Source: Cycas panzhihuaensis
Lineage: Eukaryota; Plantae; Cycadophyta
Direction of reading: 5' to 3'
NCBI GenBank assembly: GCA_023213395.1
Contig: CM041465.1
Span: 68,641,741-68,705,740 of the forward strand
DNA length: 64,000 bases
The notes beneath the pieces are model-generated. The model did no database searches. It was not told the origin of the DNA and was given only the letters and a program-made list of their open reading frames with translations. Shown piece by piece: positions 26,878-56,712 of the stretch. A program made the position numbers and the translations under genes. Positions within the stretch are counted from its first letter, which is position 1; every line of letters starts with the position of its first letter.

Positions 26878-26936
<59 letters not shown>

Positions 26937-31998: not shown

Positions 31999-34319
31999 AT
32001 TGATGTGTTAAGACTTCCTTTATTATATCTTCATTCCTATTATTTTAATAGTTTTACATGATATTGGAGCATGTTAAGGTACAATATCAATTATAATTGT
32101 TGACTATTATACTAGTTTTGGTGTGTTGATGGAATTAATATTTGTTACATACTATTAAATATTATTTATTAGGTTGAGATATTCAAAATTTTTAAACAGA
32201 TTTAGATGCATATTATAGGATGTATTAGAGTAGGTTTACAAGTTTTCGTATAAAGGTGCTCTTTTATAACACCTATTTTCAAACATTGATATGTGAGTAC
32301 CATTGAGCAAACAAAACTAGTAATTTTCTTTAAGGGGAAGTAGCCAAACAATAAGCTACAAATGCTTGTTCAAAGATTTATGGTATAATCTTTATATATT
32401 AAAGATACTTATTCATACTTTAAGTATGAGTTTTTTACATTTGGTATTTAGTATTAAGAACTTAAAATCAAACTACAAAATAATATGACCTATATATAGA
32501 TGTTTATAAATAACATGCAACCTAAATATAATCACTTTTGATGCAGGAAAATTACTCATTTTAATGAGCATTTTATACCTTTTATTTGCTATACATGTAG
32601 ACTAAAAGAGACATAAGCAGGTAGGCAGGTTGGTTCAAATAAATACATATGCAAATAGATCTACATGTAAATTGAAAAGACCTCCATTAAGAACATTACA
32701 TAAAAGTGTTGAAAAAGGACATTAATAATGTTGGGGCCACTAAATTTTAAAAAAGAAAAAAAAAAAAGAACTCTAATTAATAAAGGACATTAAGCAATGA
32801 TTAATATTAACTTTAGAATAAGGTGTGCTTGATTAAACAATGAAAATTCATTGCAAGATTCCAATATGTACATTGTAAAGTTACAAACTTTATTATTATT
32901 TTTTTTTTTAAATCATCATGCAATCATTTTTCAACATGTGTAGCGGTGACAAACTATCCATTGATTTTCTGTGAACTGCAAACGAATTACATAAGAAAAT
33001 AAATATCTATTTGATCAATAAAAGACTCTAATAAGTCATGCCCATTGAGGGATTAAACTTTATGGATGAACATGGTAGAATAAAGGCAAACAAAGACACC
33101 AAACCTTTTCTTATATGTAGAGAAACTATATAGGAAATCATGCAAAGAAGCTACCATGAAACTCACCATACAACCAATGCAATGACTGAGATGCCACTAT
33201 GGAGGGTATGTCAACACTAGAATTAACAGGCCACTATGAATGAAAAACCTTGTCTCAAATCCATAGATATACTAAGGTAAGTTGTGCATATAAAGAGTTT
33301 GTATGTATATTTACACAAGGAAGATCTATAAAAACAAAGATAAAACATAACTTTGAAGGTCACTGTTAAATCCTACATGGTAGAGAAGAGTCAAAGGTTA
33401 TATACTAAGAAAATATAGAGGAAAAATATACCTAGTGGATGTTAAACAAGCCCAAACAAGGATGGAGGAGGAAGATGAATATTTTTTTATATACACAATC
33501 ATGATTATTGCCACAAAACCATTCATAATGGCTTATCAAACTAATCATTAATAAATCAGTAATGCAATAACAAGGAGATTTTTGAATAAAATAACTCCAA
33601 AATAATGAACAAAAAAAATTTAGGATAATTTATTCACCATCCATGCAAGTTTGGAGAATATTTTATGAAAATAATCTTATATAGACATTGGATTTTAAAA
33701 AAAAATTATATTTATATAATATTAAATTAAATTAAAAAGTAATTTGAGGTCTATGACGAAGCCCCTATCAGCTAGCCTTTGATCACATGGTAATTTAGGA
33801 GATAGAGTTATTATAAGATGATTTGATATATACTTTGAAAAAGTAAATATACCATAATGCTCACAAGAAGCACTTTAGTATAAATTTTTGATGAAAATTT
33901 ATTTTTTTATGATTTTTGTAACATTCCAATTATAGGAAAATAATTTAATGGAGAACAGGGCAGAACATAAACAAATAATCATTAATCAATACATCATTGT
34001 TGTATAAACAAGAATTCTTTATATTCAATCCATTGTTCTGAAAAGAGAATTATAAATGTCCAAAATGGGGCGGTCTCTAAAAACACCACGGTTGCACACC
34101 CCTCAAAATATATAGTTTGGTGGAGGAGGGAAACTTCTCAACCCCTAAAATTTAAATACCATTAAAATAATAACTTAACTTAAATCAAATTAAACTTACC
34201 TTATACTTACCTACACATGTGAGTACCCACATGTGTAAATTGATGAGTATGAGGTGTCCACTCTTAGTTAGAAGGTGGGAGAGAGGTGATGAGTATTAAC
34301 CCCAACATTCTCGCCCTTA

Positions 34320-35000
34320 ATGATCATCACGAACAATGTCTTCTCTTTAAGCTTATGGAATTTGTACTTGAAAAAAACTTTGAAGATTTATCTTTTGGCT
34401 TGATCATTATCAAATTGCTTTATCCTTTTACCAACGTGTGTCGTACCATTGAGTGGTGAAAAAAAGTTGTAAGTAAATGAAGCTTGATTCAAATATGTAT
34501 GTGCAGCTATAACTTCAACTTTAACTTCTAAAACTTTAATTTTATTTTTTAAAAACTTTATACTATAAACAACTATTATATTATCATATCTCTTCCCTTC
34601 AAATGGAGGATCAGGTTGTTGTATAACAAGATAATCATGCATTTGATTTGAATCTTCTTTGGTCTTTTCATGACAATCCACCTATTCTGACAACTGTCTC
34701 ACATGCTCAACATCAATGTTAAATGCATTGAGGGTATCTCCCCCATAAGTGGAAATCAAGACATCCCATATGGGTTTAGAAGTTGTTAATTCATAAACTT
34801 TAGAAAAGACATCATCATTTATAGTGCAAAATATTAAAGCCAGGGCTTCATTGTCTTTTTTAATGTTTTCCTTAATACTAACATCATGTTCATCTTATAA
34901 GTATTTCAAAATATCATGTGTAATAAAATAATGTTGCATTGTTTGATGCCATAGTGAAAAATTATGGCCATTAAATATAAAAAATTGTACTTGATTAAGA
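34320..35000 (-). pseudogene. Truncated Copia gag mini-ORF
   Basis: FNGHNFSLWHQTMQHYFITHDILKYL...KKDNEALALIFCTINDDVFSKV.ELTTSKPIWDVLISTYGG, continuing into ORF 34388-34681. Confidence 0.8.
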
Positions 35001-36510
35001 TTAATTTCTTTTTTTTTTTTTATTTAGTACATAAAAGGAATATGCTTTTACAAAGTCAAAGAACTCAATAAATGAATAAGTATGACAAACTTATAAGATA
35101 TAATTTCAAATAAAATTTAAAATATGATGAATATATAAGTAAATTTTAAATGTAATTAAGATCCTCTTAACTAGGTCTAAATTGAAACTTTGAAGGTGAA
35201 AAAATAAAAAGTTCTTAAGATAATCCTATAAGGATATAGTTGAATACTCAAGTTTAACAGCTTTAAAATTGTACTAAACAATGTCAGAATAATGTGAAAC
35301 TTTACTAGTATGAAGATCAACGAAATAACTATTCAATGGAATTAACCGTTTTGAAAACAAGTTCTTGCAAGTCAATATTTTGATGAACCAAAGGTACAGT
35401 CCTCGTTTTGAAGCCTAACAGAAGCTTAGGGCTCAAAATAGTATAAAAATATTAATAAAAAACATATAAAATGATGGAAAATGATCAATTATAGTTTATA
35501 AGGCTACTTAATATACTTTTTAGTTGAAAAACTTGAAAATTAATATATAAAAGGATGTAAAAATGACAAATTAGAGGCTATTAAGTACCTCAAATTTGAT
35601 AGATTTGAAAATCTGAAAAAACACTTCAAAACTTATAAAAAATAGTGTTAGTTCGAAGAGGAGTGAGTTAGCTTCCCAACAAAATTGATGGATCTGAATT
35701 CTAACGTAAAACAGAAAAGTTAGAATGAAAATAACAACAAGTACTTTTATGGTTAAATGTTTAAAAAGTGTTGAAAAACACTAAAGTGTCACTTTGGTTG
35801 ATTAAAATAATAATTAAAATAAATCTTAAAAAATAAAATAAATAGATGATAATGAAGTTTGTTGATAGTATATGACTGCAGAATAGATCTGGGTAGAAAA
35901 TAATCACCTAGTGATAAGATGTAATCTGTTAAAATGTGATTTTGTAAAAAAAATAAAAAAGGCTCTAAAAATTAATGCCTAACTTTAAACTGAGTAAAAC
36001 ATGGTCAAATTAGTTCCAAATAGGTCATATGACTAGTCAAAATCACACCTCAAAAAATTTTAGACATAATGGGATAGGTCTTGTCAGAAATCGATGACCC
36101 CGTCAAAAGATATGACAAAAATTTGCCAGGTACCCTGTGTGAATTGAAAAAATAAAAAAATAAATCAAAAAGAAAAATTTTATGAAAATTGAATTGACCC
36201 CTTTAAGCAACGAGCTAAAGGTCACATGGAAGGATATGTGACTAGGGGCTAAGACTAAAAGGCTTAAGTTTACAATCCTAGAATTCAAAATATATATAAT
36301 TTAATTTAATTTTTTTTAAACCTTTATAAAAAATAAAAAATGAAAGGACGTCGCCACCTAAATATACAGAGAAAACCACAAAATGAGAAAATACGTCGTC
36401 ATTCGACCAAAGATAGGTATGTGTAAGGGCATCTTCCAATCTATTCCAGCGATCCTCGCAACCCTTACCATGGCCCAATGTAAGGAAGACGGTCATATGA
36501 AAATCACCCA

Positions 36511-36594
36511 GGCTTAGGGGCATATGGTTCTGAGCTCGGTGGCCTTAATCCTAGTGCCCTAGGCACATATGCTTCGCAAGCAGCTGCTTTATAG
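36511..36594 (+). pseudogene. Possible captured fragment of a UBA2-like RNA-binding protein C-terminus
   Basis: GLGAYGSELGGLNPSALGTYASQAAAL*; resemblance from memory only, and the sequence is low complexity. Confidence 0.3.
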
Positions 36595-36732
36595 GAGTCG
36601 GTGGATTAGGCCAACCGACTGGGGGTAGGTCATTGCAGTGTGCCAAAGAAGGTGCAGAAATTACTTCAGAATAAGGATCTAAGTATTGAAAAGCACGTGC
36701 ACAAATCGATTGCAGTGGTGAATGCCATTGAG

Positions 36733-36881
36733 CTAAATTCGTTTAGTTTGAAACTAAAGTCTTGCATTATGTTTCATTTGTTAATGAATGTGGCCTTCCA
36801 GAGGTAGGGTTAGATTATGGGGGCCTCTTCAAGGAGTTCTTAACAGATTTGGCAAAGCCTGCTTTTGATCCTCGTTATGGA
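36733..36881 (+). pseudogene. UPL7: Captured HECT E3 ligase fragment (UPL7/UBE3B-type)
   Basis: [49 protein letters not shown] (one frameshift), matching the plant UPL7 HECT start. Confidence 0.85.
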
Positions 36882-37028
36882 CAAGGTAGGGAAGCGACGT
36901 CCTCTAGGGTTGTAGATCTGACATGATTTTTGTGTGTGCAATTTGATATGGGGCTAGCCATCTATCGAGTGTAATAGAACCTCAAATCCTTGGATTGAAT
37001 AGAGTAGCGTATCTTTTAAGATGTCGCC

Positions 37029-37147
37029 ATGTCAACTCCTGCAAGGAAGAGGCTTATGAGGGATTTCAGGAGGTTGTAGTAAGATCCTCCTGCAGGAATC
37101 AGCGATGCTCCTCATGACAATAATATAATGCTTTGGAATGTCGTTAT
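37029..37147 (+). pseudogene. UBC2: Captured ubiquitin-conjugating enzyme UBC1/2 (RAD6) N-terminus
   Basis: [38 protein letters not shown]; the QQ codons are deaminated to stops. Confidence 0.95.
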
Positions 37148-37330
37148 CAGGATGTAGACCCAGATTTTGGTTCATGTCAGGCAAAGGAACTTCTAGATCA
37201 TCTTGAAAGCATGCTTGCAAATGAGTTTATTTCTATCAATAGTGGTCAGCATATAGTAGAAATTAAACCACGGGATGTTAGCAAAGGTCTAGTAGTAGAA
37301 TAGATTCTTTCAACAATGGTGCAGAGAGGC
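37145..37330 (+). pseudogene. TPS: Captured class II trehalose-6-phosphate synthase (TPP domain) fragment, spliced
   Basis: YQDVDPDFGSCQAKELLDHLESMLANEFISINSGQHIVEIKPRDVSKGLVVE*ILSTMVQRG; continuous across the KPQ|GVSKG position (37273/37274). Confidence 0.93.
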
Positions 37331-37969
37331 TCCTGTTAGGAAATGTTATGTGATTCATTCTTTTTTTTATAAAGGAGCAAAACCTAGGACCTATGGGATA
37401 TGATTTTGTCTCTATTTTGCTAGATGGTGTTTCTATGGAAAATGATTTTGTCTCTATTCTATCAGAAATTTTTGTTAACATTTTGGTATATGATGTTGAG
37501 GGCTTCTTAACAAAATGGATTAGACTTTGTTACAGGTATTTGGTAGACGAGGTTTGTTCTCTTCCACCTTACTCACAAACATACAAATATTAAACTGTGT
37601 TTTTGATTTTGCCTTTAGACGATTGTACTTATGAACGTGTCTTTTTCTTCACAAAACTTTCTTCATATAACTATAAGTAGTAGATGTATTAAATCAAAAA
37701 ACATATCAACAGAACCAGATCTTTTAAATATATTGATAGAAATATATCAAATAAATAAAATACATGTATATTTGAATCTAAAATATTTTAAATATGTTAA
37801 AGCAGATATATCAGAAAACTAAAAAAGATATATGTTTAAATATAAAAATAAAACTTAAGAACCTTGTAATGTAGTTGTGGCAGATTTATAGCAGATTGAC
37901 TTCTGATTCTTCCAGTAGATGGATATGCTATAATATATGGCTTGTTGGGCTGAATATGCACCACAACTT

Positions 37970-38465
37970 ACAGATCTGAAAAATAACTTAAAAAAAATAG
38001 TCAAATATATGATAAAATATACAGATCCGAAAGAAAATTTGAATAAATGTTACAGATCTAAAGTAAGTATTATAGATCTCAAGTAAATATTACAAATCTG
38101 TAGCTAATATTGCATATTTAAAGTAAATATTACAGATCTAAAATAAATAAACCAGAAAATAGTGAAATATTTAATAAAATAAGCAGATCTGAAAAAATAT
38201 ATAGTAGATCTGAAGAATATATAACAAATCTAAAGGAAACTTTAATAAATATTACAGATCTAAAGTAAATATTGTAGATCTGTAGCCAATATTGCAAATC
38301 TAAAGCAAATATTGTAGATCTGAAATAAATAAACCAGAAAATAGTGAAATATTTAATAAAAAAATAGATCTAAAAAAATATATAACAGATCTAAAGAATA
38401 TATAGCAAATCTGAAGGAAACTTGAGTGAATATTACTTGCAGCTGTGCTCCTGCATAGATCTAGA
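37970..38465. repeat. ~20-bp degenerate tandem array (AATATT..CAGATCT core) with ~190-bp higher-order unit
   Basis: Recurrent aaatattacagatctaaagt; block aaataaataaaccagaaaatagtgaaatatttaataaaa occurs twice. Confidence 0.85.
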
Positions 38466-39479
38466 AAAAATATTAGATAAATAGACAAAATATGCTTGAA
38501 AAATATTAAATATTTAACAGAAATATATAAAACTAGTTGATAAAACCACTTGTAGAGTGATGACAATTTGATATTTACTGTTTGCAGTTATGCACCTACA
38601 CAAATCTAAAGAAAATCTAGAATATATTTGTTATATCATAAGTATAGCTTCAAGAATAATCAAATCTCTGATAAAAAATACAAGAAACTTACTAATAAAC
38701 TTTACAGAAAATGAATATAACCAATATTTCTTTCTTGTGAGTAGATCTGCTACAGATATCAATAAATCTTCTTTCTCTCCACAAAAACTTCAATAGGCTA
38801 TCAAAATGTTAATAGATCAACCTGCTCTGATACCAGATGAAGGAAAATAATGCATGCTAAAATAGCTTTAATACCAGATGTAGGAAAAATAATGTGATGG
38901 AGAATATGGTAGAACATAAACAAATAATCATTTATTAATACATCATTATTGCATAAACAATAATCCTTTATATTCAATCCATTGTTATGAAGAGAGTATT
39001 CTAAATGTTCAAAATGAAGGCGGTGTCTAAAGACATTAGGGTTGCATACACATCAAAATATATAGTTTGGGGGGGGGAGGGAAACTCCTCAACCCCTAAA
39101 ATTTAAATAACAATAAAATAATAACTTAACTCAAATTAACTTAAATCAAATTAAACTTACCTTATACTTACCTACACATGTGAGCACCTACATGTGTAAA
39201 TTGATGAGTGTGAGGTGTGCAGTCCTGGTTGGAAGGTGAGAGTAGGGTGATAAGCATTAACCCCAACACCAGTTACTTATGAGTAGACTAAGGTAACAAA
39301 ATCACTCATTCTAGCTACTTATGTGGAGATTGATGAATTTTGTAGATTTCTTACTCTATTTCTATGCTTGTTTAATTACTTTCTAGTTGTTATTTAATTA
39401 ATTTTTTACTTAAAATGGTTAATAGAGAAAACATAATAGGTATAATTTCTGAAAACTCTTAGGACCTAAAAATTATATT

Positions 39480-42400
39480 GTATGGAAACATTATATATTT
39501 AGTTTTTCTCATTTAAATGATCTTTGGAAGTATGTAAATGATTCACTAAAGGATAGAAATGTTAACAAGATTACTGCATCTGAAACTAAATTAACTATTG
39601 ATGTTATTTTTAATGTTGAATATTGATCAAAGATACATATAACATTTGGTTTTCTTAGCATGTACATCAGTGGCAGTAACATTTTAAATATCAAAGGAGC
39701 TACTACACCAAGGTAGATGTGGAATATGGTCATGAACTTATTTAAGCATAAGGATGATTTGAGAACCTTGAATTTATGAAGTTAACTATATAGTTTGAAG
39801 ATGGCTAAAAATATGATAGAATGCATGTGTAATGTGAGGTCAATTCAAGATCAATTATTGACAATAAGGGAGAACACTCTTAAATCAGAAGTCATTACTT
39901 GTATATTAAGGAGTCTTCCACTCTAATATAAGAGCTTTATAACCATATTAACTTTGGCTAATAAATTGTCTACTATGATAATTTGTTATTTAGAATCCTT
40001 GCTTATGGAATATGAGCAAAAACTAAAACACATGCATAGTAAATCATCTAGGGCATTTTCATCTAGATCAAAAGGTTAAAAGGCATGTATTCCAAAGAAG
40101 AATATACCTTTTGAACCTATTATCCAAAAGGATAGACCTAGAGCTTCAACGGGAGAATATAGACCTAAATGTAGTAGAGGAGATGTCCACTTCAATTACA
40201 AAATAGTTATTTATTATCATATATAAAGTGGGTTCTGATATATAGGATGTATAGTTCATTGATTCTAGTGAATCATGACATATGACTGGAAGGTTAAATT
40301 GATTCTCTAAGATGTGGAAAGTAAATCAAAAAGTAATCATTGGGGATAACACTAAGTTGGAGGTTTCTAGACTTGTAAATATATCATTTCCCTTATGAAA
40401 TGATGATTAATCATATTTAGAAAATATTTTGTACATACTAAATCTAAAGATAAATATTCTTTCAATTGGTAAAATTAAATGACAAGATATAGCTATGATA
40501 TTTGCTTAAGGATAGTGCATAGTCTAAGATAAATAGAATAAGATTATAGACATAAGACTTAGAGAGAATAATATGTACAAACTATAAGGACACTCTTATG
40601 TATAAAGAGAATTCCTTACTATATCACCAAAACAAAAATTATGGTATGAAGTAATGGGTTATTTGAACTACTCTTGTCTCTAATCAATATAAAATTAAAA
40701 ATGGTGCATGGTCCTCCTATGATTAATAATAAAAATTATTTATGTAAACATTATATATTTGGAAAGAAACATAAAACACTATTTCTAGAGTGGAAAGCAT
40801 GGAGAAGCAAAGAAAATTAGAGTTAGTTTACTTAGATATCTCTAAACCAATGCTTGTCATCTCACTAGGTGGACTGAGATCCTTCATCATTTTTATTGAT
40901 GGCTTTTCAAGGAAATTCTAAGTTTTTCCATTGAGGAAAAAATTGCAAGCCTTCACTTACTTCAAATAATTTAAGAAGTTAGCAGAGAATGAAAGTAATT
41001 AGAAGATAAAGATCTTGTGAACTAACAATGCTTGAGAGTGTACTTCAAATGAATTCATATAGTTCTGCAATGATCATAGAATTAAGAGGCAATTTATTAT
41101 TGCTTATATGCCTTAGAAGAATGGAGTTGTTGAGTGGATGAACCAAATATTAGTTAAAAAAGCCAAAGCGATGTTAAGAGACAAGGATGTTATAGATTTC
41201 TTATAGGTAGAAGTTATAAACATAGTTGCATATATAATGAATAGAAGCATTAAAAGGGTTGTTAGGAACATAACACTTGAGGATGTTTAGTTAGGTAGGA
41301 AACCAACTATAAGTCATCTTAGAGCCTTTAAGTGTGATGTGTATATACATATTCCTAAGGAGAAATAGTGAAAGTTAGAAGATAAATGTATAAATTATAT
41401 CCTTATTAGACACTCTGAGGAAAACAAAGTGTATAGAGCATACAAGTTGTTCACTTTAAAAGTTCATACAATTTGTGATGTAATTTTTTAGGAAGATGAG
41501 AATTAGAATGTTGGTTCAATTAATGCTAAAAATTAAATACAGGAATCACCTAAATATAGTTCTTCATATGATCTAATTCAACTTAAATATGACTTATTTG
41601 ATATTGGTAAAATATAATTAGAATCCTTTTAGTTTTCATAAGTTAAATTTGAGCTGAAAATGAAGATTATAGTAGAAACTAAAGCCAAAGCTAAGGAAAT
41701 TGTATGATCCTTTACCTTCATCTTTAAAGAAGAAGCTTCCAAAATGATATTTAAAAAATTGTGGAGGATGCTTCTAAAAAGATGCAACCTTATGAATAGG
41801 TGAATATAGCTCTTATGGCATGTGTGTTAGATGCAAATGAACCATCTATAATTGAAGAACTAGCTAAAGAACAAAAGTGGAATAGCATTATAGAGACCAA
41901 ATTCTAAGCTATTAGAAGGAATTGCATATGGGATCTAGTTGAGTTGGCTACTAGTAAGCATGCAAATGAATCTATAGGAAAAAATTCAAATAGAATAAAT
42001 TTGTAAATAGATACAAAGCTCAACTTATAGCAAAATACATCAAGTAATAATAAGGGATCAACTACCTAAAAATATTTGCTCTTTTGTATAGATGAATATC
42101 ATTTGTCTCATTATGATGATAGTTGTATAATTTAATTCATAATTTTACCAGATCGATGTAAAGAATGAATTTTTAAATGGGGATTTAAATGTAGAAGTCT
42201 ACATGGAGTAGTCACTTGGCTTTGTTTGAAAAGGTCATAAGCACTTAGTGTACCAACTCAAGAAGGCCTTGTATAGCCTAAAATAAGATCCTAGAGCCTA
42301 GTATAAAAAGATTAATTAGTACTTTTTAAAGAATAGATTTGAGAGATCTCTAATTGGCTAAAATCTATATATCAAAGCTAAAAATAACAAAATCATATTT

Positions 42401-43345
42401 GTGGTGTTGTATATTGATGATCTCTTGATCACATATAATGATATCAATATGATATTAAACTTGAAGGAAGATCTTAGTCATTTCTTTAAGATGATAGATT
42501 TAGGAATTTTATACTACTTTCTTTATGTGGAAGTATGGCAAAGGCCTAAATATATCTTCATCTCGTAGACAAAGTACACCTCAAAATTTTTGAAGAAATT
42601 TAAAATAGATTATTGAAAACCTATACGTACCCCCATAGAGATAGGTTCTAGATTAATAATGAAAAATAGTGAAGCAGGTGTTGATTCTACATTGTACAAG
42701 TAACTAGAGGGAAGTCTAATATACTTGATTGGTACTAGACCTATTATATTTTGTACAATTAGAATGGTATCTAACTTTATAGAAATTTCAAAATAGAGTC
42801 ATTAAAAAACTATGAAAAGAATCCTCAAATACTTGAAATGGACGATCCAATATGAACTTGAATTATTTCATAATAATAATTTCAAGTTGATAAGATTTAT
42901 AAATTCTAATTAGATCGGATATTTAGATAGCAAAGAGTTAACTTCTAAATACTATTTTAGTTTAGGTTCAACTAAAATCACTTAGAATAGTGAAAAGTAA
43001 TCCAATATTACTTTATCCTAAAATGAAGTAGAGTACAAGGTTGTAATTATAGTAGCTACTAAAGCCACTCGGTTACGATAGATTCCAAAGAACATGAGAC
43101 TACCACAATTAGAACCAACTATCTTACACAATGATTATCAGAGGACTTTAAAATTTTTAAAAATTTATATTTTCTATGATCATACCAAACATATTGAGGT
43201 ATACTATAAGCTTAATCAAGACTTGATTCAAAACAGTATAATTGAGATGGTGTACAAGCCAACAAAAGAATAGTTGATTAACATCTTCATCAAATAATTA
43301 GCATATGATAGATTCTAGACTTTTAAAGATGGTTTAGGTATTAGG
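39480..43345 (+). pseudogene. Copia gag-pol remnant
   Basis: LNDLWKYVN gag, IFIDGFSRKF integrase, QIDVKNEFLNG and LYIDDLL RT, HTKHIEV RNase H; highly degenerate. Confidence 0.9.
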
Positions 43346-44957: not shown

Positions 44958-47926
44958 TGAATAACCCTCAAATCCCATCAACTACCCTTATAGGAGTCAA
45001 ATGGAACTCAAGGGTCATGCTTGGGTAATATGACATAAATTTCTACCAATGTTCAATATATCTAGTTGGCTAATATTCATGCAGCACTTCCCCAAGGAGA
45101 TCTATTACTCATTAAATGAGTAATGAAGCCAATCTAATGAGAAACAAACCTCTAAAACATGATAGATTGACTTCACTAGTCAACTACAAAAGCATCAAGG
45201 GATTTACAACATGGCCATAGGTCTATCTTTCTAGATAGTCTTCTCTTTCCTCATATTACATCATTATTAATCAGCCTTAGTTTTATATCTTTCTCCTAAG
45301 ACTAAGTTAGTTTACCCTTAACACATGACCATGTCTAGTTTAAACTTATAGAGGAGCTTAGTTAGTTTATACTAGTCATGAAGTATAATTCTAGTTTATA
45401 CTCATAGAGAAGTATACTATAGTTTAGCCTTGTTATGGAGCTATGGTCGTTTTACCTCATTTTAGAGCATAATTCATTAGAATGAATGAGTACCCCATCG
45501 CATCTAATAATACCATCAATACAGGATAAAACCCCAAATCTAGTTGTGTGAATAAGAAATTGACTATTAAAATATAAGGAAAAGAAGTCCTAGGGCATGA
45601 TCCTTGAAATGGTTAAGATGTTGAGAGTGTCCACATTGAGATGAATGTGCCCCTCGCCATTGAAATCCTAAGTAATAATAAAAGGAAACTCATTAAAAGG
45701 CCCCTTTAAATGAATATTATCCTTAAGGGTATAATCTAATAGAATCTTAGGCTAAGTAGTTGGCTTCAAACTACCATTAGTTACTTCTTCTCATAGTATT
45801 TAATTGCATGCCTTAAAGGGTTGGTGAATAGTATTGATGGGAATGAAGTGTTTAAGGCTAGAAAGGACGTTAGGCACTCAAGTAGAAAGGTAGATGGATT
45901 ACTTTAAAGCAATCTTAAGCTTGCAAGTACATTGTATTAGAGATTAATCTAAGGGTGGTTTATATAGAATTAGCTCATAATAATAATTTAGAGGGATTGG
46001 GATAAATCTATATAAATACATCAAAACAGATTTGTTATACCTAAAAGGAACTACCACTAAGAGGACCTCCTTATTACACTTGAGGTAGGTCTATGGTGTC
46101 ATAAATAGAGAAATTAACACCAAGCTCATAAGTCTTTAAAGGAAAGATATCTAAATCACTTCTAAAAAATGTGTCCTACTTGGGTTGACGCAAGTTTTCA
46201 TAATAAAGTAAACACTCAATGAGAGGCTCAAGAGTCTCAAAAAGGCTAGAATCCTCATCACTATTGAAATGGATCCATCAACAATTTGGGAAAGGCATAT
46301 AGGGAAAATACTTATTGCCTAACTAAGTGATATAAGGATTAGAGTCAATTTCCATAACCCTAGCTTCTCCCATTGGGCATATGCTCAAAGGTAAAGCAAC
46401 CACTCATAAAATTAACCCCAACATTTGTTATGAAGTAAGCATAAATATATCTAAGTAAGAAGACGAATCAAAATCAAGCCATTCTAGAAAAAGATCTTAT
46501 AAATCAAATCTAACTTTAATAGTGTTATGTCTCATAAGGTCCTCAAATGTAGAGAAAATCATTACAATCATATATAATTTTTCTTCTTTTAATTCTCTAG
46601 CTTATAAAGGGAAATCTTCCTAATCAAGTTGGCATAGGTTGTTATCAAAACAATAGTTTAGGCTCATTTTAGAGGTGTGATAGCTTATCCTCACTCCAAA
46701 TGAATGATAGTTTAGGCTCATTTTAGAGGAATGGTAAAGATCTTATGGTGATTCTAAATTAAGACAAGCATAAAGACCAAAAAAGGCTTAGGATCTTCCC
46801 AAAGATGAGTATCTTGATCATTATTAAAGGAATTAGTATCCAAGATATGCTAGTAAGGATATGGTTCAAAATCTAATTAAGGGATATTGAGATTTGAATA
46901 AGATTTCATAACTATAGTTTGCCCCATTAGGCACATGCTTGAAGGTAAGGCAACCCTATACAAAATCGATCATTATGTATATTGCAAAGTAAGCACAAAT
47001 GCTCTTAAGTTAGTAGCAAAATTAAGTCTAGCTCTTCTAAGATAAACACCACATGAATCAAGTCTAAGCCTTAAAGAAGAAGCATATTATATAGGCTAAT
47101 AAAAAGTATAAATAAAAAATGTTGTAATAAACATGGCCCCTATTACCTCTTCAAATGTGCATTGAGAAGTAAGGACACATAAGGAAATGGAGGTGGAGTG
47201 GAGTGGAGTGGAGATAGAGGTGAAGTATACCAAATGAACCAAATAAAAACTACACTACAATGAGCCTTAAATGAACTAAACTCTTTACTAAAACCACTAA
47301 AGAGCATTGCCCTATGATGTCTTCAAGAAAAGTTTCATCAACAAATGGTCATTGGGCACATAATAAGTGCAAGCCTAAATAAGGCTTAAAAGATCTTGCT
47401 TAAATCCTCCTTTAAGGTTTAGAAATTTAAAAGAAGGGAGGGGAGGAGATGGTAAAAGAGAACCTTAAGTGTAATGGTATTCTTTTTAGAGTCTATAAAG
47501 GAAAAGGATGAGGCCCCAATAAATAGGAGATGTTATTATCCCCTACAATGCCTTAAAGACTAAATTAGGATATATATATATATATATATATAATTGGATA
47601 AAGGTTTTAATGTCCTGAAAACTAAGAAATCTCAAAAATTTTAGCAACACAACAACAATATGTTAGAGAAATTCTAAGATAAAAGGATGTAACTAACCAA
47701 ATTATGAGAATCTTAGAAAGTTTGGTAGAACAAAATTTACAAACTAAATAATTTCTAAGAAAAATTAATGAGTAAACCTAAAAGTAAAAGAGAAAGTATC
47801 TCAACTCTAAAAAACTTAAAAAATTTAAATCTAAAGAGATTTTGAGATTTAAAAAGGTAAGGTAGGTCTAGTAGATCCTTAGTATTATCACTAGTGATGA
47901 TTTCCTCATTAAAAAGGGCTTATGAG
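44958..47926 (-). mobile_element. Old Gypsy-like internal remnant, probably continuous with ~19740-21391 and 53607 onward
   Basis: The same ~30-bp degenerate repeats (agtttaaactt.tagagga, tttaggctcat) occur at ~21020-21230, ~45330-45470 and ~46650-46730, on both sides of the 21392 Copia. Coding motifs are weak. Confidence 0.4.
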
Positions 47927-48339
47927 TGTAGGAAAAATAATCATGGAGAACATGCCAGAACATAAAAAGAGATAATCATAAATCATTACATCATTGTTAC
48001 ATAGTAACATAAACAAATAAAACTTGTATATTCAATCCATGTTGTAAGAGAGATTTATAAATGTCTAAACTGAAGGTGGTGTCTAAAGACACCAGGGTTG
48101 CACACCCCTCAAAATATATAGTTTGGGGGAGGAGGGAAACTCCTCAACCCCTAAAATTTAAATAATAATAAAATAATAACTTAACTTAACTCAACTTAAA
48201 TCAAATCAACTTAAACTTACCTTATACTTACCTTCACATGTGAGCACCCACATGTGTAAATTGATGAGTGTGAGATGTGCACTCCTAGTTGGAAGATGGG
48301 AGAGGGGTGATGAGCATTAACCCCAACATTCTCCTCCTT

Positions 48340-49051
48340 AATGATTATCAAGGGCAATGTCTTCTCTTTAAACTTGTGGACTTTGTACTTGAAAAAAACT
48401 TTGAAGATTTATTTTTTGGCTTGATCATTATCAACTTGCTTTATCCTTTTACCAATGTGTGTCTTCACCATTGAATGGTGCAAAAAATCTATAGATAAAT
48501 GAAGCTTGACTGAAATGTGGATGTGTAGTTGTAACTTTGACTTTGTCAACTGGAACATTAAGAAAACTTTAAACTTGAACTTTGTTTTCTGAAAACTTTA
48601 TGTTATATGTAATTGTCATATCGTCATATATCTTTCCCTCAAATGGAGGATCAGGTTCTTGTGCAACAACATGATCATGCATTTCATTAGAATCGTCCTT
48701 AGTCTTGTCATTACAATCCACCTGTTCTTGCACCTGTCTCACATGCTCAACATCAATGTTAAATTCACTGAGGGTATCTCCCCCATTAGTAGAAATAAAA
48801 ATGTCCCACATGGATTTAGAAGTTGTTAATTTACAAACTTTAGAAAAGACATCATCATTTATAGTGCAAAATAATAAAGCTATGGCTTCATTATCTTTTT
48901 TAATATTTTCCTTAATGCTAACATCATATTCATCTTGTAGGTAACTTTAAAGATTATATGTAATAAAATAATTTTGCATAGTCTTATACCATAGTGAAAA
49001 TTTATGGCCATCAAATATAAGAAATTATACTTGATCGAGATTGATTATCAT
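48340..49051 (-). pseudogene. Truncated Copia gag mini-ORF
   Basis: FDGHKFSLWYKTMQNYFITHNL...KKDNEAIALLFCTINDDVFSKVCKLTTSKSMWDIFISTNGG (includes ORF 48569-48811). Confidence 0.8.
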
Positions 49052-50574
49052 TTTATCGAAAACTTTAGTATATAAAAAAGAATATGCTTTTATTAAGTCA
49101 AAAAAAACTCAATAAATGATAAGTATGATAAACTTATAAGATATAATATCAGATAAACTTTGAAGTAAAATAAATATATGAGTAAATTCAAATATAACTA
49201 AGATCCTTTTAACTAGGTCTAAATTAAAACTTTGAAAATAAAAAAATAAAAAGTTCTTAAGATAAACCTTATAGGATATACTTTGATGCTCAAGTTTAGC
49301 AGCTTCGAAGTTGTACTAAACAAAGTTAAAATAAAGTGAAACTTTACCAAATTGAAGATTAATGAAAGAACTATTCAATGGAACTAACTGTTTTGAAAAG
49401 GGGTTCTTACAAGGTAATATTTTAATGAATAAAAGGTGCAGTCCTCCTTTTGAGGCTAAACAGGAGCTTGCACTCAAAATATTATAAAAATGTTAATAAA
49501 AACTTGTAAAATGGTCAATTATAGTTTAGAAGGCTACTCGATATACTTTTCAATTGAAAACTTAAGAAAAAATATATACAAAATATGTAATAATGTCAGA
49601 TTAGAGGCTATTAAATACCTCAACTTTGATGGCTTTGAAAATAAATAAAAACACTTCAAAACTTATAAATAATAGTGTCAATTCAAAGAGGAGTGAGTCA
49701 TCTTCCCAATGAAACTAATGGATATGAATTCTGATGTAAAACAGAAAAGTTATAATGAAAATAGCAACAAGTACTTTTATGGTTAAATGTTTAAAAAAGT
49801 GTTAAAAAACACTAAAGTGTCACTTTGATCTATTAAAATAATGATTAAAATAAATCTTAAAAATAAAATAAATAAATGATAATGAAGTTTGTTGATAATA
49901 GATAACTACATAATAGATCTGGGTAGAAAATAATCTCCTGGTGAGAAAGTATAATCTGACAAAAAAGGTTTTTATGAAAATAGTTCAAAATAGCCTTAAA
50001 ACTCAATGAGTGACTTTAAACTTATTGAAACCTGATCAAATCAGCTCCAAATTGGTCATATGACCAGTCAAAATCATATTATAGAAAATTTCAAATGTAA
50101 TGGGATAGGTTTTGTCAGAAATGGATGACCTAGTGAGAAGTTATGATAAAAATTTGCCAAGTACCCTATGTGAAATGAAAAAATTAAAAAAAAGAAAAAG
50201 AAAAAAATGTTATAAAGATTAAGACACCCCTTTTAACAATGAACTAATGGTCATATGATGTAGTACGAGACCAGGGGATAAATCTAAAAGGTGCTTAAGT
50301 TTTAAAAACCCTAGATTCAAAATTTTAAACAATTTACTTTAATTTTTTTTTTAACTTTATGAAAAATAAAAGATAAAAAATAAAAAATAAAGATATGTCA
50401 TCGTTGGCACGCAGATGTCGCTTGTCAGTCTGTCACATATCTGCGCCTGTACATTGAATCTATGCTAAAGACGCTACCATGAATGCTCCCGCCGCCGCCT
50501 CAACTGCGCTACCATCTGGGAGTTGTCGCCTTCGCCGTCAAACCAACACAGGTCACCACTAAAGCCACTACGCA

Positions 50575-50922
50575 GAGGAGAAATAGATCGATGGGAATGA
50601 AACTGACCTTTCAGTGTCAAGGTTACGCCAGCCTAACTTAGGAGGATTTAATGATCCTACAACTACAGATGTTATTTTGAATCTACAAAGGGTTTCATCC
50701 AAAGATCCGAGAGGAATTAATGAGGTAGAGCAGGTGTGTGCTCAAGCTCATTTACATTCCAATCTTTTACAACGGTCAAGATATTTTGTTGCCCTTTTAT
50801 CTGAGAGATGGAAGGTATCTGTTAATGGTAAATCTAATAAGCCTTTCTACTTTAACTTGCGCGTTCTGTCTTCGAGGATGGTGGAACCCTGTTTTACTGT
50901 ATTCCAGTTGTTTTATCCCTAA
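50575..50922 (+). pseudogene. Captured plant BTB/POZ-domain protein fragment (At1g63850-like family)
   Basis: GGFNDPTTTDVILNL...HLHSNLLQRSRYFVALLSERW resembles the family motif FNDP..SDV.L.L...LH...L..S.YFAALLSDRW. Confidence 0.75.
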
Positions 50923-51177
50923 TTGGCATTGGATGTGTAATGTCATGTGCATTCTTTTGGATTAGGTAGAAGGAAGATACAAATTAATCTTTTTGATTTT
51001 GTTATAACTATTTTGGTCATCCCTTTCTTTCAATTGAAAAGAAGAGGATTTGGATTGATATTTACTCTTGATTTATTCCATTCACTCATTATCAATGGAT
51101 AATACCATACCTACTTAGTTTTTTGGGTTTGGCTGGTGTGGTGGGTCATGGTTTCTATTGTTATTTGTGGAGGGAAA

Positions 51178-51309
51178 ATGGTGGAGCAGCTTACAGAGGA
51201 GTAGATCTTAGAGTTCAAGAAGGCGTTCAGCTTGTTTAACAAAGATGGAGATGGATGTATCACAATGAAGGAGCTTGGGACAATTATGCGCTCTCTTGGT
51301 CAAAATCCA
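51178..51309 (+). pseudogene. CAM: Captured calmodulin N-terminal fragment, spliced
   Basis: [43 protein letters not shown]; continuous through the Gly26 codon (51253-51255), where plant CaM genes have their intron. Confidence 0.95.
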
Positions 51310-51612
51310 AAGAGACTATTGTGGAATCATTTGGATCATTTAGTTGTCCTTATTCATCAACTTCAGATGTGGAGCAAAAGGAGCAGGCCTTTGCATGTAA
51401 AGGGACTGGAGCAAGTATGTAAGAGGTTATAGGTAATGAAAAACTATTGGGATTCTTTTCAGGAGGATCTAGGGGTTAGCAAATCTAACATAATGATTGG
51501 AGCAGCTATTGGAGCCACTATGGAAGGCTTATGCTTTTTTAGAAGACCACAGTTTTTCTCATCATTGCAAGGAGATGCTTGAGCAATTCATTATGGAACT
51601 GTAGTATTGAAG

Positions 51613-51676
51613 ATTGTGAAGCAAATATTTGTTGGCATTTAGGACCTGTTAGATCAACCTAATCCTATTGATCCTG
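51613..51676 (+). pseudogene. SCE1: Captured SUMO-conjugating enzyme (SCE1/UBC9) fragment
   Basis: IVKQIFVGI*DLLDQPNPIDP versus plant SCE1 TVKQILVGIQDLLDQPNPADP. Confidence 0.85.
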
Positions 51677-52449
51677 AAAATGCGTCTTTATGTATTGTAT
51701 TAGGAGAGCTCAGAAGGTTGATTATTTAGAAGTTATTTCTGAAATGAAAACAAGATACGCATTTGATTTTGCCTTTGAATGATGGTGCTTATGTACATGT
51801 CTTTTCCTTCACAAATATGTTTAGACCAGAATATATATATATATATATATAATGTAAAAAAACTTTGGCCGCCACGTAGAGTGGCTGGTTATAAAAGAGA
51901 AATCTAACTCACCAGATCTCACCACTACATAGGCTCTCAAGGCCTATATGCAAATGGAGCAAATGCATAAATGTAGTAGAAAATATTTAAAATTATATAT
52001 TTATATAAAACATAAAAGATGAGTATTGTGTTTGAAATCTTTCAAATACACTTTGGGGTTTCATAAAAATTTCTTCAAATAATAACAGTAAAAAAAAAAA
52101 AAACATTTAATGGAAGAATATAATCATACAATAGAGTCATAATGAAAGCAAGAAAGTTTTTCAAATATATGGATAGAAATATATCAAATAAATGAAATGC
52201 ATATATATTTGTATCTGAAATATTTCAAATATATTGGAGTAGATATATCACAAAACTAAGAAACATATATATGTTTAAATCTAAAAATAAACTAAGAAGA
52301 ACCTAGTAAACAGTTGTGGTAGATTTGTAGCAGAATGACTCCCAAAGATGAGATCTTCTTCCACACAAATCAAAGCTTCAAACAGATTTCTCCAATAGGT
52401 AGATATGCTATGATATACGGTTTGTTGGACTGAATATACACCAAAACTT

Positions 52450-52825
52450 GCAGATCTAAAAAAGAACTTGAAACAATGGTCAAATATATGATAAAATATA
52501 TAGATCTGAAAGAAAACTTGAGTAAGTATTGCAGATCTAAAGTAAATATAGAAGATCTATAGCCAATATTACATATTTGAAATAAATAAACTAGAAAATG
52601 GTGAAATAATTAATAAAATAAGTAGATCTGAGAAAATATATAGCAGATCTGAAGAATATATGGCAGATTTAAAGGAAACTTGAGTAGATATTGTAGATCT
52701 GAACAAAATAAACCAAAAAACTATCAAATATTTGATAAAATAAGCTGATCTGAAGGATATATAGCAAATCTGAAGAAAACTTTAAATAAATATTGCTTGT
52801 AGCTATGCTCCTACATAGATCTAGA
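52450..52825. repeat. ~20-bp CAGATCT array homologous to 37970-38465
   Basis: Recurrent cagatctgaa/tagatctga units with a different copy number from element A. Confidence 0.8.
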
Positions 52826-55800
52826 AAAACTATTGGGTAAATAGATAAAATATGCTTGAAAATATCAAATATATGATCAAAAATATATAAAACTTGTTGA
52901 TAAAACCTCTGGTAGAGTGATAACAGCTTGATATTTACTGTTTGCAACTATGCACCTGCATAAATCTGAAGAGAATCTGAAATATATATGTTATATCACA
53001 AGTAAAACTTAAGAATAATCAAATCTGATCAAAAAATACAAGAAACTTAGTAATAAACTTTGTAGAAAATGAATATGACCAAGCTTTTCTTTCTTATGAG
53101 TAAATCTATCTCAAATGCCAATAAATCTTCCTTATTTTTCAAAAAATTTCAAATGAAGATGCAATAGCCCAACAATCTCTGCTCTGATACCAAATGTAGG
53201 AAAAATAATCATGGAGAATAAGGCAGAACATAAAAAGAGATAATCATAAATCATTACATCATTGTTGCATAGTAACATAAACATATAAAACTTGTATATT
53301 CAATCTATGTTATAAGAGAGCTTTACAAATATCCAAAATGAAGGCAGTGCCTAAAGACACCAGGGTTGCACACCCCTCAAAATATATAGTTTGGGGGAGG
53401 AGGGAAACTCCTCAACCCCTAAAATTTAAATAATAATAAAATAATAACTTAACTCAAATGAAATTAACTCAACTTAAATCAAATCAACTTAAGCTTACCT
53501 TATACTTACCTTTATATGTGAGCACCCACATGTGTAAATTGATGAGTGTGAGGTGTGCACTCCTGGTTGGAAGGCGAGAGAGGGGTGATGAGCATTAACC
53601 CCAATAATGAGAGCATTCTATATAATCTAAAGGAACTCATGAATAACTCTCCCCAAAAGAGAGTCATAGGCATATATTTTAACCAACTGAACGATGTAAG
53701 AAAGCATGAGCCTAACTAAAGTAGAAGGAAATAAACTATCTTAATTAAATTAATTAGACAAGAAATAAAAGGAAAATAAATAATACATAAAATATCTTAA
53801 TTATGATCCTAAGAACTAGACACAAATAGCAACAAACTAATTGAACCAAGAATGAGGAAGTTGGACTATAGGTGACACTTAGTGTAATGACCAAACTATT
53901 AAAGACATCTGTCAATTAAAGTTTGCCATACCAACTACCTTATATAAGGTCCAAAGGAAGGACCAAGTACCATGTAATTCTAGAAGTGTAAGATTAGCCC
54001 ACTTATTAAAGTAAATTAATCCCTCTGAAGGAAATGTAGCCTTAAAAGAGAGAATATAGAGAAAGTTAAGTCAAGGGTCTAAGACCACCCAACTTATCAA
54101 AGCCAATTGATTCCTTCCATGAAACAAACTATGCTAAGGAAAAAAATGTGAAAAAAAAATAAATAAATAGAAGTATGATTTCAAAATGAAAATATGATTC
54201 AAAAATAAAATAAGTAAAAAACTACTAATTAATCAAAGATTTAAGCAAACTAAAATATACATAATCGAGCAGTCAAACTAGCATACACAAGCACCAAAAA
54301 TCTAAGAAGGAAGAGGATATTTACTTATACTTATAATCAACTCTAACTCATAAGCTGAAAACATAATATTTTTTCCCTTTTTCTAAAAAATATGAACTAA
54401 AACATAAAACAAATAGGTAGCTAATCACTCAAGTGATAAAAATGTGAAGTAAACATGTAGCTAGAAATCTCAGTGTGTGTTTAAGGATTTATTTTTTTGT
54501 TTTATTTTTACTCTAATACCCTAGTCAAATGTTATATTTCAATAAGAAAATTAATTAACTTAATATCAAAGTGATGATAATAAGGATATGAATGTAAGAC
54601 TAACCAATAATGAAACATAACTCTAAACATCAGCAAAAAATGCCTAAATTAAACAAGTAAGCAAGCAATCCAATTATAATAAAAATCCACATCAAATTCA
54701 TAGAAACTTAGACAGCATTTCTATTAAATCTAAAGAATTTATAATGAATCTATGAGCTACTAATCTAAAATATGCTAAAATATTATTTAAAACTTGAAAC
54801 AAGAGAGCTCATAAAATATGAAATTTTTAGAATTTTTCTAGTATAAATGTTATACCTAAGGAAATTTTAAGAAGAAAAACATGTATGAAATGTTAAATAT
54901 TGTGGGAAAAAAGATAGAACTTCTTAATTCAACTGAGGCAAGTTTTAAAAATCTAAATATAAATACTTTTTAAACTTTATATATTGAAAAACCCACCTAT
55001 TATTAAAAAATCCATAATAAAAGATAACCAACTAAATAAATAGACTTGGTTCCATTAATTTCTATAACCACCAAGTTAAGAAAACCCAAATAATATATGA
55101 AATCAAATTAAAATAAATAATAAACTTTGAAATCAACTTTGAAGCCCTACAAAACAAGAGTTAGATGTAAAAGATAAAAGAAAACTAAATGAAATTAGTA
55201 AAACTTACATCAACCATAAAAATTAATGAAAATTATAAACTAATAATGTGATGGTTGGGAACTTGTAAACATCTAGCTAATAATACTTAAATAAACACGA
55301 AGTTAATGGCAAAGTTTTCCAAACAAAATAAACAAACTCCCCAATGGTCAATCACAAGTTAAGTAGGCTCAATCTTAAATATTATATAACATTATTGAAA
55401 ATATAGTAAAGCATATTTATTAGACATATGAATATACAACAAAATACATATACATAAGGTGATAATATATGTAAATAATAAACAAACTAACTTAAGAATG
55501 AAATATGTATAAGCACATAAGATAATAAACCTTATGGAAAATGATCATCTCCAATCATTGTATTAGGTATGAATGCATATTTATAGTACATAGTCACCTC
55601 ATGCTTGTCTAATCATATATAAGACCCTGATATCTAATATTGGGATAATTACATGAAAAGGTGTGAACTACCTTTCATACAAGTTAATATCCTAATTTAA
55701 TAATCCTATGAGAAAGTTAAGGGGGACTCCTTAACATTAACATTAACTCCAACACCACCCCCCCCCCACAATGTTTAATTACATAATTTAAATGTCTCAT

Positions 55801-56508
55801 CAACACTCTTTTATCAAGGCAAGAACCATCTGTCTTCTCCAAATAAGACAAGCATCATTTACCTTCTCTAACATGTGTCTCCATCTTATATTAGTTGTTT
55901 AACTAGAAGTTATACACTGAGCAATTCTTATTGATGTCTGTATAAAGAAATCTCCATCAACCATACTACAAAGGTAACTAGTCGCTGTAACTACAAATTC
56001 TTTAGGAAACTCCTTTAGGTACATGGTTTTATCAACACCAAGTCAACTATTCTAGGATCACTCTTGACTATGTGGCCAATCAAATAAGTTAAAAGTAAGA
56101 GTATCAAGTGGATCCCACCTCTTACTTAATGAGATTTAACAACAGTTTCTTCTTCTTAAAGGCTTCACCAAATGACTTTATTCTCTATCAATAATGCTTT
56201 CTGAGCCTACTCTCAATATATAACTATCCAATCTTAGGATTATAAGGTTTACTAACCATCTATCAATCAACAGACAACTATACTTGAAGTATCAAACTCT
56301 AAGCTCTTCAAGATTCTATGCAACATGTTTGTCTACTCAAAACACATATAACCACACCATACAAATACTAGCAACATAGGATGTGACTTTATAAAAACTA
56401 AAAAAATAATTCGCTCATCAAACATTTTTAACTAATATGGGTTCTTGAGAGCCTCAAAAATTCTAAGCCTATAGAATAATCTTGCTTTCCTCAATTAGAA
56501 TTGGCCTA

Positions 56509-56712
56509 AATTCCACTAATTCTTATATGAGTATAGGGATCTAGATTAATAACTCTAGATATCAAAGACCACACAGTAGGAGAGAACCATGAAGAATAGA
56601 AAATTTTGACCATACTAATCTTCTAATAAAGACTGATAAGATTAACCCCATCAAATAGAAGATATCCTGCCATTAATGCATAAAGTATAACTCCATAAGA
56701 CCATACATCTAC
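56509..56712 (-). pseudogene. CIPK: Captured CIPK/SnRK3 kinase subdomain IX-XI fragment (CIPK8/24-like)
   Basis: VDVWSYGVILYALMAGYLLFDGVNLISLY*KISMVKIFYSSWFSPTVWSLISRVINLDPYTHIRISGI. Confidence 0.85.

Follow-up and report, generated by a model that had tools for sequence, protein, structure and literature searches.

Two copia-derived retrotransposons of Cycas panzhihuaensis carrying different antisense mosaics of host gene fragments at one leader position: a variant of known gene capture

The window analysed here, a stretch of 64,000 nucleotides from Cycas panzhihuaensis, contains two sister LTR elements, A and B, which carry different strings of host gene fragments at the same position. They represent a variation on gene capture by retrotransposons as already known; a purpose-built, reloadable slot is not shown by them. 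A and B are old copies, from two subfamilies, of a non-autonomous, pol-less Ty1/copia-derived retrotransposon. The preferred reading, with a probability of roughly 60%, is that the cassettes of these old elements were built by serial reverse transcriptase template switching on packaged host mRNAs and have since been carried passively.

Structure and strand of the two elements

Element A (33931-39268, 5338 bp) and element B (47927-53606, 5680 bp) both lie on the minus strand. Alignment of the four LTRs revealed that on the plus strand they start with TGTAGG and end with CCCCAACA. The 5' LTR of A (38879-39268) reads TGTTGGGG...CCTACA in sense and its 3' LTR is located at 33931-34307; the corresponding LTRs of B are at 53195-53606 and 47927-48328, and all four are on the minus strand. 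Both elements have direct LTRs with TG...CA termini and 5-bp target duplications, which are identical in B (ATGAG/ATGAG at 47922-47926 and 53607-53611) and one transition apart in A (CCAAT at 33926-33930, CCAGT at 39269-39273).

A scan for primer binding sites (PBS) placed the tRNA-iMet sites beside the right-hand LTRs on the minus strand only. The site in B is perfect (TGGTATCAGAGC, 53181-53192). Element A has a degenerate site adjoining the LTR (38865-38876) and a second, perfect TGGTATCAGAGC at 38824-38835, and sequence reading showed that a copy of the LTR end precedes the second site, making the primer-binding region with both copies (38824-38878, minus strand) a tandem duplication of LTR end and PBS. 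Polypurine tracts on the same strand, AAGGGCGAGAA in A (34308-34318) and AAGGAGGAGAA in B (48329-48339) when read in sense, abut the 3' LTRs. A truncated copia gag was identified on the minus strand of each element, at 34391-35023 in A (~210 codons with two in-frame stops; Pfam PF14223, Retrotran_gag_2, E=3.2e-8 at 34685-34894, minus strand) and at 48572-48946 in B (PF14223, E=4.7e-5). The gag is described as truncated because it matches only positions 31-77 of the 172 in the Pfam profile and contains stops. No pol-like frame was found in a six-frame reading of A and B, and the 4.5-kb interior leaves no space for pol. A homologous-protein search with the gag stub of B gave no match, and metagenome scans with the conserved B LTR motif and with the PPT-LTR junction gave 0 matches each.

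The earlier note on this DNA had misjudged the strand, as its "mini-gag" lies opposite to the cargo. Since the tRNA-iMet PBS, the polypurine tract and the truncated copia gag are all on the minus strand, the cassette is placed in the 5' leader, between PBS and gag. The order in sense is 5' LTR, tRNA-iMet PBS, a leader of ~3.8 kb, truncated gag, PPT and 3' LTR, with the leader itself running from an AGATCT repeat array through the cassette to an AT-rich scaffold.

With the exception of the cassette block, A and B are about 82-88% identical throughout. BLASTN aligned 33933-36345 of A with 47929-50378 of B (82.4%) and 37722-39268 with 52158-53604 (82-85%). The common parts include the AT-rich non-coding scaffold from cassette to gag (35024-36345 in A, minus strand; defined by BLASTN, reading frames and GC content) and the array of 20-bp repeats each containing the palindrome AGATCT, which is real in both elements as the earlier note had described (38044-38434 in A and 52503-52793 in B, minus strand, the array of B being shorter). 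There are 16 AGATCT sites in A and 12 in B, compared to ~2 expected by chance as estimated from base composition. The identity within LTR pairs is 87.7% for A and 94.3% for B, and that between the LTRs of A and B is 83-88%; the two subfamilies were already ~8% apart at insertion. Their different target duplications, unrelated flanks and LTR identities indicate that A and B are independent insertions from two subfamilies, and the sister relationship that had been proposed for them is supported.

The variable slot and its cargo

Nothing aligned by BLASTN between slot A (36346-37601, 1256 bp) and slot B (about 50379-51761, 1383 bp), so the claimed divergence between common anchors stands. The borders of the two cassettes coincide to ~3 nt at the right and ~20 nt at the left, where the border is uncertain by ~20 nt because it falls within an (AAAAATA)n tract. 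The GC content of the slots is 0.39-0.48 compared to 0.20-0.30 for the flanks, which indicates that the cassettes are foreign in origin, and no copy of either slot was found elsewhere within the 64-kb window. TATA-like and splice-site-like motifs at the slot borders were set aside as expected in AT-rich DNA. The suggestion of a length-conserved slot is based on just these two values. The right anchor is a 54-bp island (37602-37655 in A, 51762-51815 in B, minus strand; 85% identity by BLASTN) with a smaller second variable site just beyond it. This second site, 54 bp from the main slot, was recognised by sequence comparison and as a BLASTN gap; it is a ~245-bp block present in B only (51816-52061) and is flanked by the 8-bp direct repeats TTCACAAA and TTCATAAA.

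Cassette A (plus strand) contains a HECT/UBE3C-like piece at 36771-36884 (PDB 6k2c, E=9.5e-6), a UBC2 piece at ~36990-37150 comprising the 5' UTR and Met1 to ~residue 40 (three-frame reading; PDB 2aak, residues 19-40, E=7.8e-8) and a trehalose-phosphate phosphatase domain at 37133-37300 (Pfam PF02358, E=3.8e-14). Cassette B (plus strand) contains the 5' UTR of a calmodulin followed by Met1 (~51178) to ~residue 45 (~51310), which matched the Pfam EF-hand (E=1.4e-8) and PDB calmodulins over residues 10-45 (E about 1e-24). A BTB-like piece at 50587-50919 (28 of the 30 nearest Atlas clusters BTB, score 0.92) is a lead only, and an SCE1/UBC9-like piece at ~51610-51690 was recognised by eye only; the PDB search gave no support for either. 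Pfam gave no match in the rest of the cassettes, that is at both ends of A and between the pieces in B. All six identified pieces are on the plus strand, antisense to the elements. Each cassette consists of decayed host mRNA pieces, unrelated to one another and strung together, in agreement with the mosaic composition first noted for the slot.

In plant CaM genes the intron sits in codon Gly26. Residues 10-45 of the calmodulin piece are contiguous across this position, indicating that at least this piece was derived from RNA. Directly 3' of the HECT piece is the sequence GTAGGG, which could be the start of a retained intron; in that case this piece would have had DNA or an unspliced transcript as its template. 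Frame reading revealed in-frame stops in the UBC2 and calmodulin pieces, consistent with an absence of coding selection on the cargo.

The GTAGGG motif, together with the 8-bp repeats around the B-only block, which fit a small insertion that duplicated its target or else a deletion in A mediated by the repeats, could be attributed to DNA-level events after integration: a nested Pack-MULE, Helitron or L1-type retrocopy, break-repair filler, or different deletions of a longer ancestral cassette. Such an origin is highly improbable for the main slots, whose borders have no TIRs, target duplications, poly(A) or Helitron-like ends. These include the signatures of nested Helitron, Pack-MULE or L1 retrocopy insertion that had been named beforehand as arguing against the slot, and with no termini the slot as a nested transposable element is rejected. 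Two independent post-integration hits on the same nucleotide in separate copies would be very improbable, differential deletion requires two deletions that are each flush with an anchor, and the calmodulin piece is without its intron.

The uniform antisense polarity of the six pieces, their constant position and the identity of the donors as highly expressed housekeeping genes would also be expected of a dedicated, selected slot that samples the transcriptome like a spacer-acquisition site, with the antisense cargo useful to the element or its host, perhaps by providing antisense or siRNA precursors that target housekeeping genes. We regard this reading, and with it the analogy drawn in the earlier note, as most unlikely. 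There is no repeat-spacer organisation, as no repeats separate the cargo fragments, and no acquisition gene or machinery, as the coding capacity of A and B is limited to a gag stub that is truncated and decayed, with no pol in either element. No stepwise gain or polarity of addition is seen in the two copies, and the cargo decays about as fast as the remainder of the element. One event with multiple switches would also give uniform polarity within a cassette, and in a neighbouring element, D, the cargo is in sense. The description of the slot as "dedicated" and "repeatedly reloaded" would rest on just two copies.

Origin of the cassettes by template switching

LTR-mediated retroposition, as it is known, already accounts for multi-gene mosaics through repeated template switches. 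Precedents are chimeras of this kind that are still mobile (PMC5131818) and Bs1 (PMC13317346). In the case of A and B, reverse transcriptase inside a virus-like particle would have switched serially among co-packaged host mRNAs to give the cassette. The published model places the switches in minus-strand synthesis on mRNA, which gives sense cargo (PMC5131818), as in D. This counts against the template-switching reading, as antisense cargo would call for a plus-strand form of the model or for host cDNA being copied. Jumps made while the plus DNA strand is being synthesised would fit the polarity. The growing strand would depart from the element just beyond the 54-bp island, copy one mRNA toward its 5' end, jump onto the next mRNA and finally return to the element at the left border, which is rich in A/T. 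That the UBC2 and calmodulin pieces reach the 5' UTR would be expected of an enzyme that is forced to jump on reaching the end of its mRNA template. The resulting chimera could then have continued to transpose with proteins from autonomous copias, and the cargo is most likely a passive by-product rather than a selected function.

Template switching explains the presence of two cassettes at one site only by half. The coincidence is non-random, albeit with two copies, and two random events hitting the same position are unlikely. Either the site is a spot that favours switching or one cassette has replaced the other.

The first of these alternatives can be extended to a recurrent switching site in the leader of a family with many antisense cassettes at the same anchors, repeatedly gained and replaced. 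This would retain the mechanistic core of the earlier idea minus its purpose, and it extends the template-switching explanation rather than excluding it. In its favour are the unrelated cassettes with closely matching borders, a rough estimate of ~1 in 10,000 that two events with random points of exit and re-entry along the 3.8-kb leader would coincide in this way, and the proximity of the second variable site. We nevertheless consider it doubtful, as there are two copies from subfamilies long diverged, and the relatives C and E within the window have no alignable anchors, their leaders giving just weak, non-collinear AT-rich matches to those of A and B. Pfam gave no match in the 2.7-kb leader of E or in a further element, F. 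That an internal polypurine tract causes such a hot spot is speculation only: the island of A includes a conserved run of 11 purines (in sense GAAGAAAAAGA), but runs like this are common, at 5-7 per element, and the case for it is weak. Tentatively, there may be one gag-only copia family, or several in the genome, in which plus-strand synthesis habitually jumps to packaged host mRNAs at one leader position, giving a hypervariable, antisense, 5'-biased cassette between fixed anchors.

Relation to known systems and significance

Maize Bs1 was reportedly described as an LTR-mediated retroposition chimera by Elrouby and Bureau in 2001 and 2010. Elements A and B resemble Bs1 and similar LTR-retroposition chimeras (Tan et al., 2016, PMC5131818) in having an interior in which several unrelated genes of the host are represented by pieces without introns, as exemplified by calmodulin residues 10-45. 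Bs1-type mosaics are ascribed to reverse transcriptase switching templates in the particle, and these chimeras also stay mobile and non-autonomous. One difference is that the cargo of Bs1-type elements is in sense, is co-transcribed from the LTR and replaces coding sequence, while in A and B the six identified pieces are on the plus strand, opposite to PBS, PPT and gag, and lie within the 5' leader, ahead of a gag stub that has been retained. A further difference is the presence of two different mosaics at one site in sister subfamilies.

With TR-GAG elements (Chaparro et al., 2015, PMC4350172), A and B share the form of a non-autonomous LTR element that has a PBS, a PPT and gag as the sole coding remnant. 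However, a TR-GAG element is <4 kb and contains a single intact gag ORF and nothing else, whereas A and B measure 5.3-5.7 kb, with a truncated gag interrupted by stops and an interior that consists mostly of leader and host cargo. Neighbour C (29196-31997, 2.8 kb) is a good fit to TR-GAG. The constant ends around a variable internal patchwork of host gene fragments are reminiscent of Pack-MULE, Pack-CACTA and Helitron capture. These systems take up genomic DNA with introns between inverted or Helitron termini, while A and B have LTRs with 5-bp duplications and a tRNA primer site; at least one of their fragments is spliced, and no TIR or Helitron ends were found.

The portions of a survey of gymnosperm giga-genomes drawn on here (PMC13477047) report exon fragments in Copia and gypsy LTR elements, with a mean of ~400,000 captured fragments per genome; most host elements contain a single fragment and 13.7% contain two or more. 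Those portions do not mention that exons captured by transposable elements are preferentially antisense or occupy a fixed position in the leader.

What has so far been known of gene capture by LTR elements comes chiefly from individual examples, Bs1 among them, and from bulk counts, and the reverse-transcription step behind it is seldom legible in sequence. In A and B the polarity, position and 5'-end bias of the cargo form a legible signature, which points to switching in plus-strand synthesis or host-cDNA copying and away from the minus-strand route of the textbooks. If the genome contains just two cassette types, then A and B are ordinary old chimeric elements. If many cassettes occur at the same anchors across the genome, the family would naturally document which mRNAs enter virus-like particles. 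Habitual switching at one site would make it a retrotransposon counterpart of Pack-MULEs, mass-producing antisense copies of housekeeping transcripts, and many cassettes would amount to a large antisense source against housekeeping genes, relevant to the epigenetic conflict over captured fragments in maize and conifers.

Orientation and anatomy of the sister elements

The LTR elements A (33931-39268) and B (47927-53606) were analysed by BLASTN of both regions and with a repeat finder, which bore out the proposal of the earlier note that they are sister elements. All four LTRs were alignable throughout, and on the + strand they start with TGTAGG and end with CCCCAACA. Element B is surrounded by a perfect 5-bp duplication, ATGAG, and element A is bordered by CCAAT and CCAGT. 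The remaining flanks of A and B are unrelated, indicating that the two elements inserted separately and did not arise by segmental duplication. BLASTN aligned them with an identity of 82-85% over 33933-36345 of A with 47929-50378 of B and over 37722-39268 of A with 52158-53604 of B. The sole match between these two aligned stretches was an island of 54 bp, at 37602-37655 in A and 51762-51815 in B.

The earlier note had taken the + strand as sense, which is contradicted by the primer site (PBS), the polypurine tract (PPT), gag and the start of the LTR, all pointing to the minus strand. The 12-nt initiator tRNA-Met (iMet) PBS, TGGTATCAGAGC, was found on the minus strand only, just inside the right-hand LTRs (38824-38835 in A and 53181-53192 in B). 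This site, complementary to the 3' end of the plant initiator tRNA-Met, is a standard copia primer site. In A, the minus-strand region 38824-38878 contains a tandem duplication of a unit in which ~15 nt from the end of the LTR are followed by 2 nt and the iMet PBS; the PBS is decayed in the copy that adjoins the LTR and perfect in the inner one. On the minus strand, a purine tract lies next to each left-hand LTR, with the sequence AAGGAGGAGAA in B and AAGGGCGAGAA in A. The sole transposon-type coding remnant in either element derives from the N-terminal part of a copia gag (Pfam PF14223) and is located on the minus strand at 34685-34894 in A and 48572-48946 in B. The sense start of the LTR, TGTTGGGG, is common to the neighbouring copia elements C, D, E and F, oriented by the same criteria.

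In sense order, both elements consist of the 5' LTR, the PBS, ~1.3 kb of leader, the 54-bp island, the cassette of host fragments, an AT-rich scaffold of 1.3 kb, a gag that is truncated and interrupted by stops, the PPT and the 3' LTR. Neither contains pol, and A and B are non-autonomous copia derivatives. The variable block is part of a leader that, at ~3.8 kb in all, is unusually long. The first part of the leader contains an array of 20-bp repeats, each centred on AGATCT, at 38044-38434 in A and 52503-52793 in B, confirming that this array is common to both elements. AGATCT is a self-complementary hexamer, with 9-12 sites per array; such palindromes in an RNA leader could allow RNA-RNA pairing or dimerisation.

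The identity between the LTRs of a pair is 87.7% in A and 94.3% in B, while A and B differ from one another by 12-17.5%, with transitions prevailing. After subtraction of the decay following insertion, the source lineages would already have been ~8% apart when the elements inserted. Identity between A and B is equal to the left and right of the slot, giving no sign of recent recombination. Protein and metagenome searches gave no further copies of the family. The earlier note had proposed a dedicated cargo slot that is repeatedly reloaded; the comparison shows two old subfamilies with one cassette of their own each, and no more than that.

Antisense host fragments in the cassettes

The non-aligning blocks measure 1256 bp in A (36346-37601) and ~1383 bp in B (~50379-51761) and had no match elsewhere in the window. 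Their GC content is 0.39-0.48, compared with 0.20-0.30 in the surrounding element. Cassette A contains the start of a HECT domain nearest to that of UBE3C, the UPL7-type ligase (PDB 6k2c, E=9.5e-6), followed by GTAGGG, which is possibly the start of a retained intron. It also contains a piece of a trehalose-phosphatase domain (PF02358, E=3.8e-14). A third piece comes from the N-terminal end of an E2 of the RAD6 type (UBC2): its residues 19-40 match Arabidopsis UBC1 (PDB 2aak, E=7.8e-8), and Met1 and upstream UTR were visible on reading of the frames. Cassette B contains calmodulin residues 10-45 (PDB, E ~1e-24; Pfam EF-hand match), with Met1 and UTR upstream on frame reading. A BTB-like piece of ~110 residues in the same cassette is a lead only, with BTB in 28 of the 30 nearest Atlas clusters and nothing in PDB and Pfam searches, and a short SCE1/UBC9-like stretch was recognised by eye only and had no PDB match. 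Approximately half of each cassette gave no identified gene piece in the searches, including those of Pfam.

All six identified pieces lie on the + strand and are antisense to the element. Frame reading revealed in-frame stops in the cassette pieces, indicating that nothing was kept as protein. Plant calmodulin genes have a single intron, in codon Gly26, and the calmodulin piece is uninterrupted at this position, which points to a spliced RNA template. The sequences show A and B to be chimeric LTR elements that were once mobile and that hold host fragments in antisense, with an RNA origin for at least one fragment. With the elements read on the minus strand, the observation in the earlier note holds, and its interpretation is partly borne out, in that alternative mosaics of host mRNA pieces do occupy the same site.

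Slot borders and the proposed route of capture

No inverted repeats, target duplications, poly(A) or Helitron-like end were found at the slot borders. Nested insertions with their own termini, the scenario that the earlier note had set against its reading, were looked for at these borders and not found, so that nested transposons were ruled out. The right border of the slot coincides in A and B within ~3 nt, and the left border, situated in an (AAAAATA)n tract, within ~20 nt. By our own estimate, borders this close would arise in roughly 1 in 10,000 cases if exit and re-entry had happened twice at random in a leader of 3.8 kb. This improbability suggests either that the site favours switching or that one cassette replaced the other via the conserved flanks. 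Within the island, immediately before the cassette in sense, lies a conserved purine run of 11 nt. That it marks an internal point at which plus-strand synthesis is primed or ends stays speculation, because there are 5-7 such runs per element. A second variable site lies 54 bp from the main cassette, where a block of ~245 bp is present in B only (51816-52061). This block is bounded by TTCACAAA and TTCATAAA, near-identical 8-bp repeats, and is either a small insertion in B or a repeat-mediated deletion in A.

Passive capture by template switching of reverse transcriptase is the most economical reading, and the cassettes would have been made by serial switches inside the particle. In the published model minus-strand synthesis hops from the element RNA to an mRNA (PMC5131818), giving sense cargo, as in element D, a minus-strand LTR element at 55395-59102 with the PBS TGGTATTAGAGT and a G-rich PPT. 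D holds a pfkB/fructokinase copy that is almost complete and lacks introns (58226 to 57266; Pfam profile positions 3-271), together with a piece of a protein kinase (56626-56745); the two lie in sense, which is the textbook polarity and the opposite of that in A and B. Antisense cargo would arise if the hop occurred during plus-strand synthesis, the growing sense-strand DNA copying an mRNA, or alternatively if minus-strand synthesis copied a host first-strand cDNA. From approximately codon 40, both the UBC2 and the calmodulin piece extend back past Met1 into the 5' UTR, and these extents fit an enzyme which runs off the 5' end of the mRNA and must jump. The pieces of a cassette all have one polarity, which is more in keeping with a single event of several switches per cassette than with loading piece by piece.

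Neighbouring elements and known gene capture

Element C (29196-31997, minus strand) is a gag-only copia derivative of 2.8 kb flanked by a perfect target duplication, ATTGA. It has an iMet PBS, and a C-terminal remnant of pol adjoins its PPT. It is ~60% similar to A and B across the LTR and the gag-PPT region, and no recognisable host cargo was found in it. Element E (8108-15714, + strand) is an autonomous copia, now decayed, that retains frames of gag, integrase and RT and is flanked by a CAAGA target duplication; its leader is unusually long at 2.7 kb and has GC-richer blocks that gave no Pfam matches. Element F (~25620-28834, minus strand) is a further non-autonomous LTR element that spans ~3.2 kb and whose iMet PBS, at 28542-28553, is perfect. 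A (TG/CA)n microsatellite and GC-richer blocks are present in its interior, and it gave no Pfam matches. An older repeat is present in two copies, 7341-19714 and 54878-60064, which are collinear in blocks with 75-81% identity. The LTR elements E and D have inserted into one copy each, so that both insertions can be compared with an empty site.

Multi-gene mosaics in LTR elements are established, with three genes in Bs1 and four in a mouse 'super' retrocopy (PMC13317346, PMC5131818). In gymnosperm genomes, copia and gypsy elements are reported to have captured exons on a scale of hundreds of thousands of fragments (PMC13477047). No published description was found of a consistent antisense polarity of the cargo, of a gag-only copia with the cargo in its 5' leader, or of two different mosaics at one site. 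The two elements are therefore filed as a variant on known LTR gene capture.
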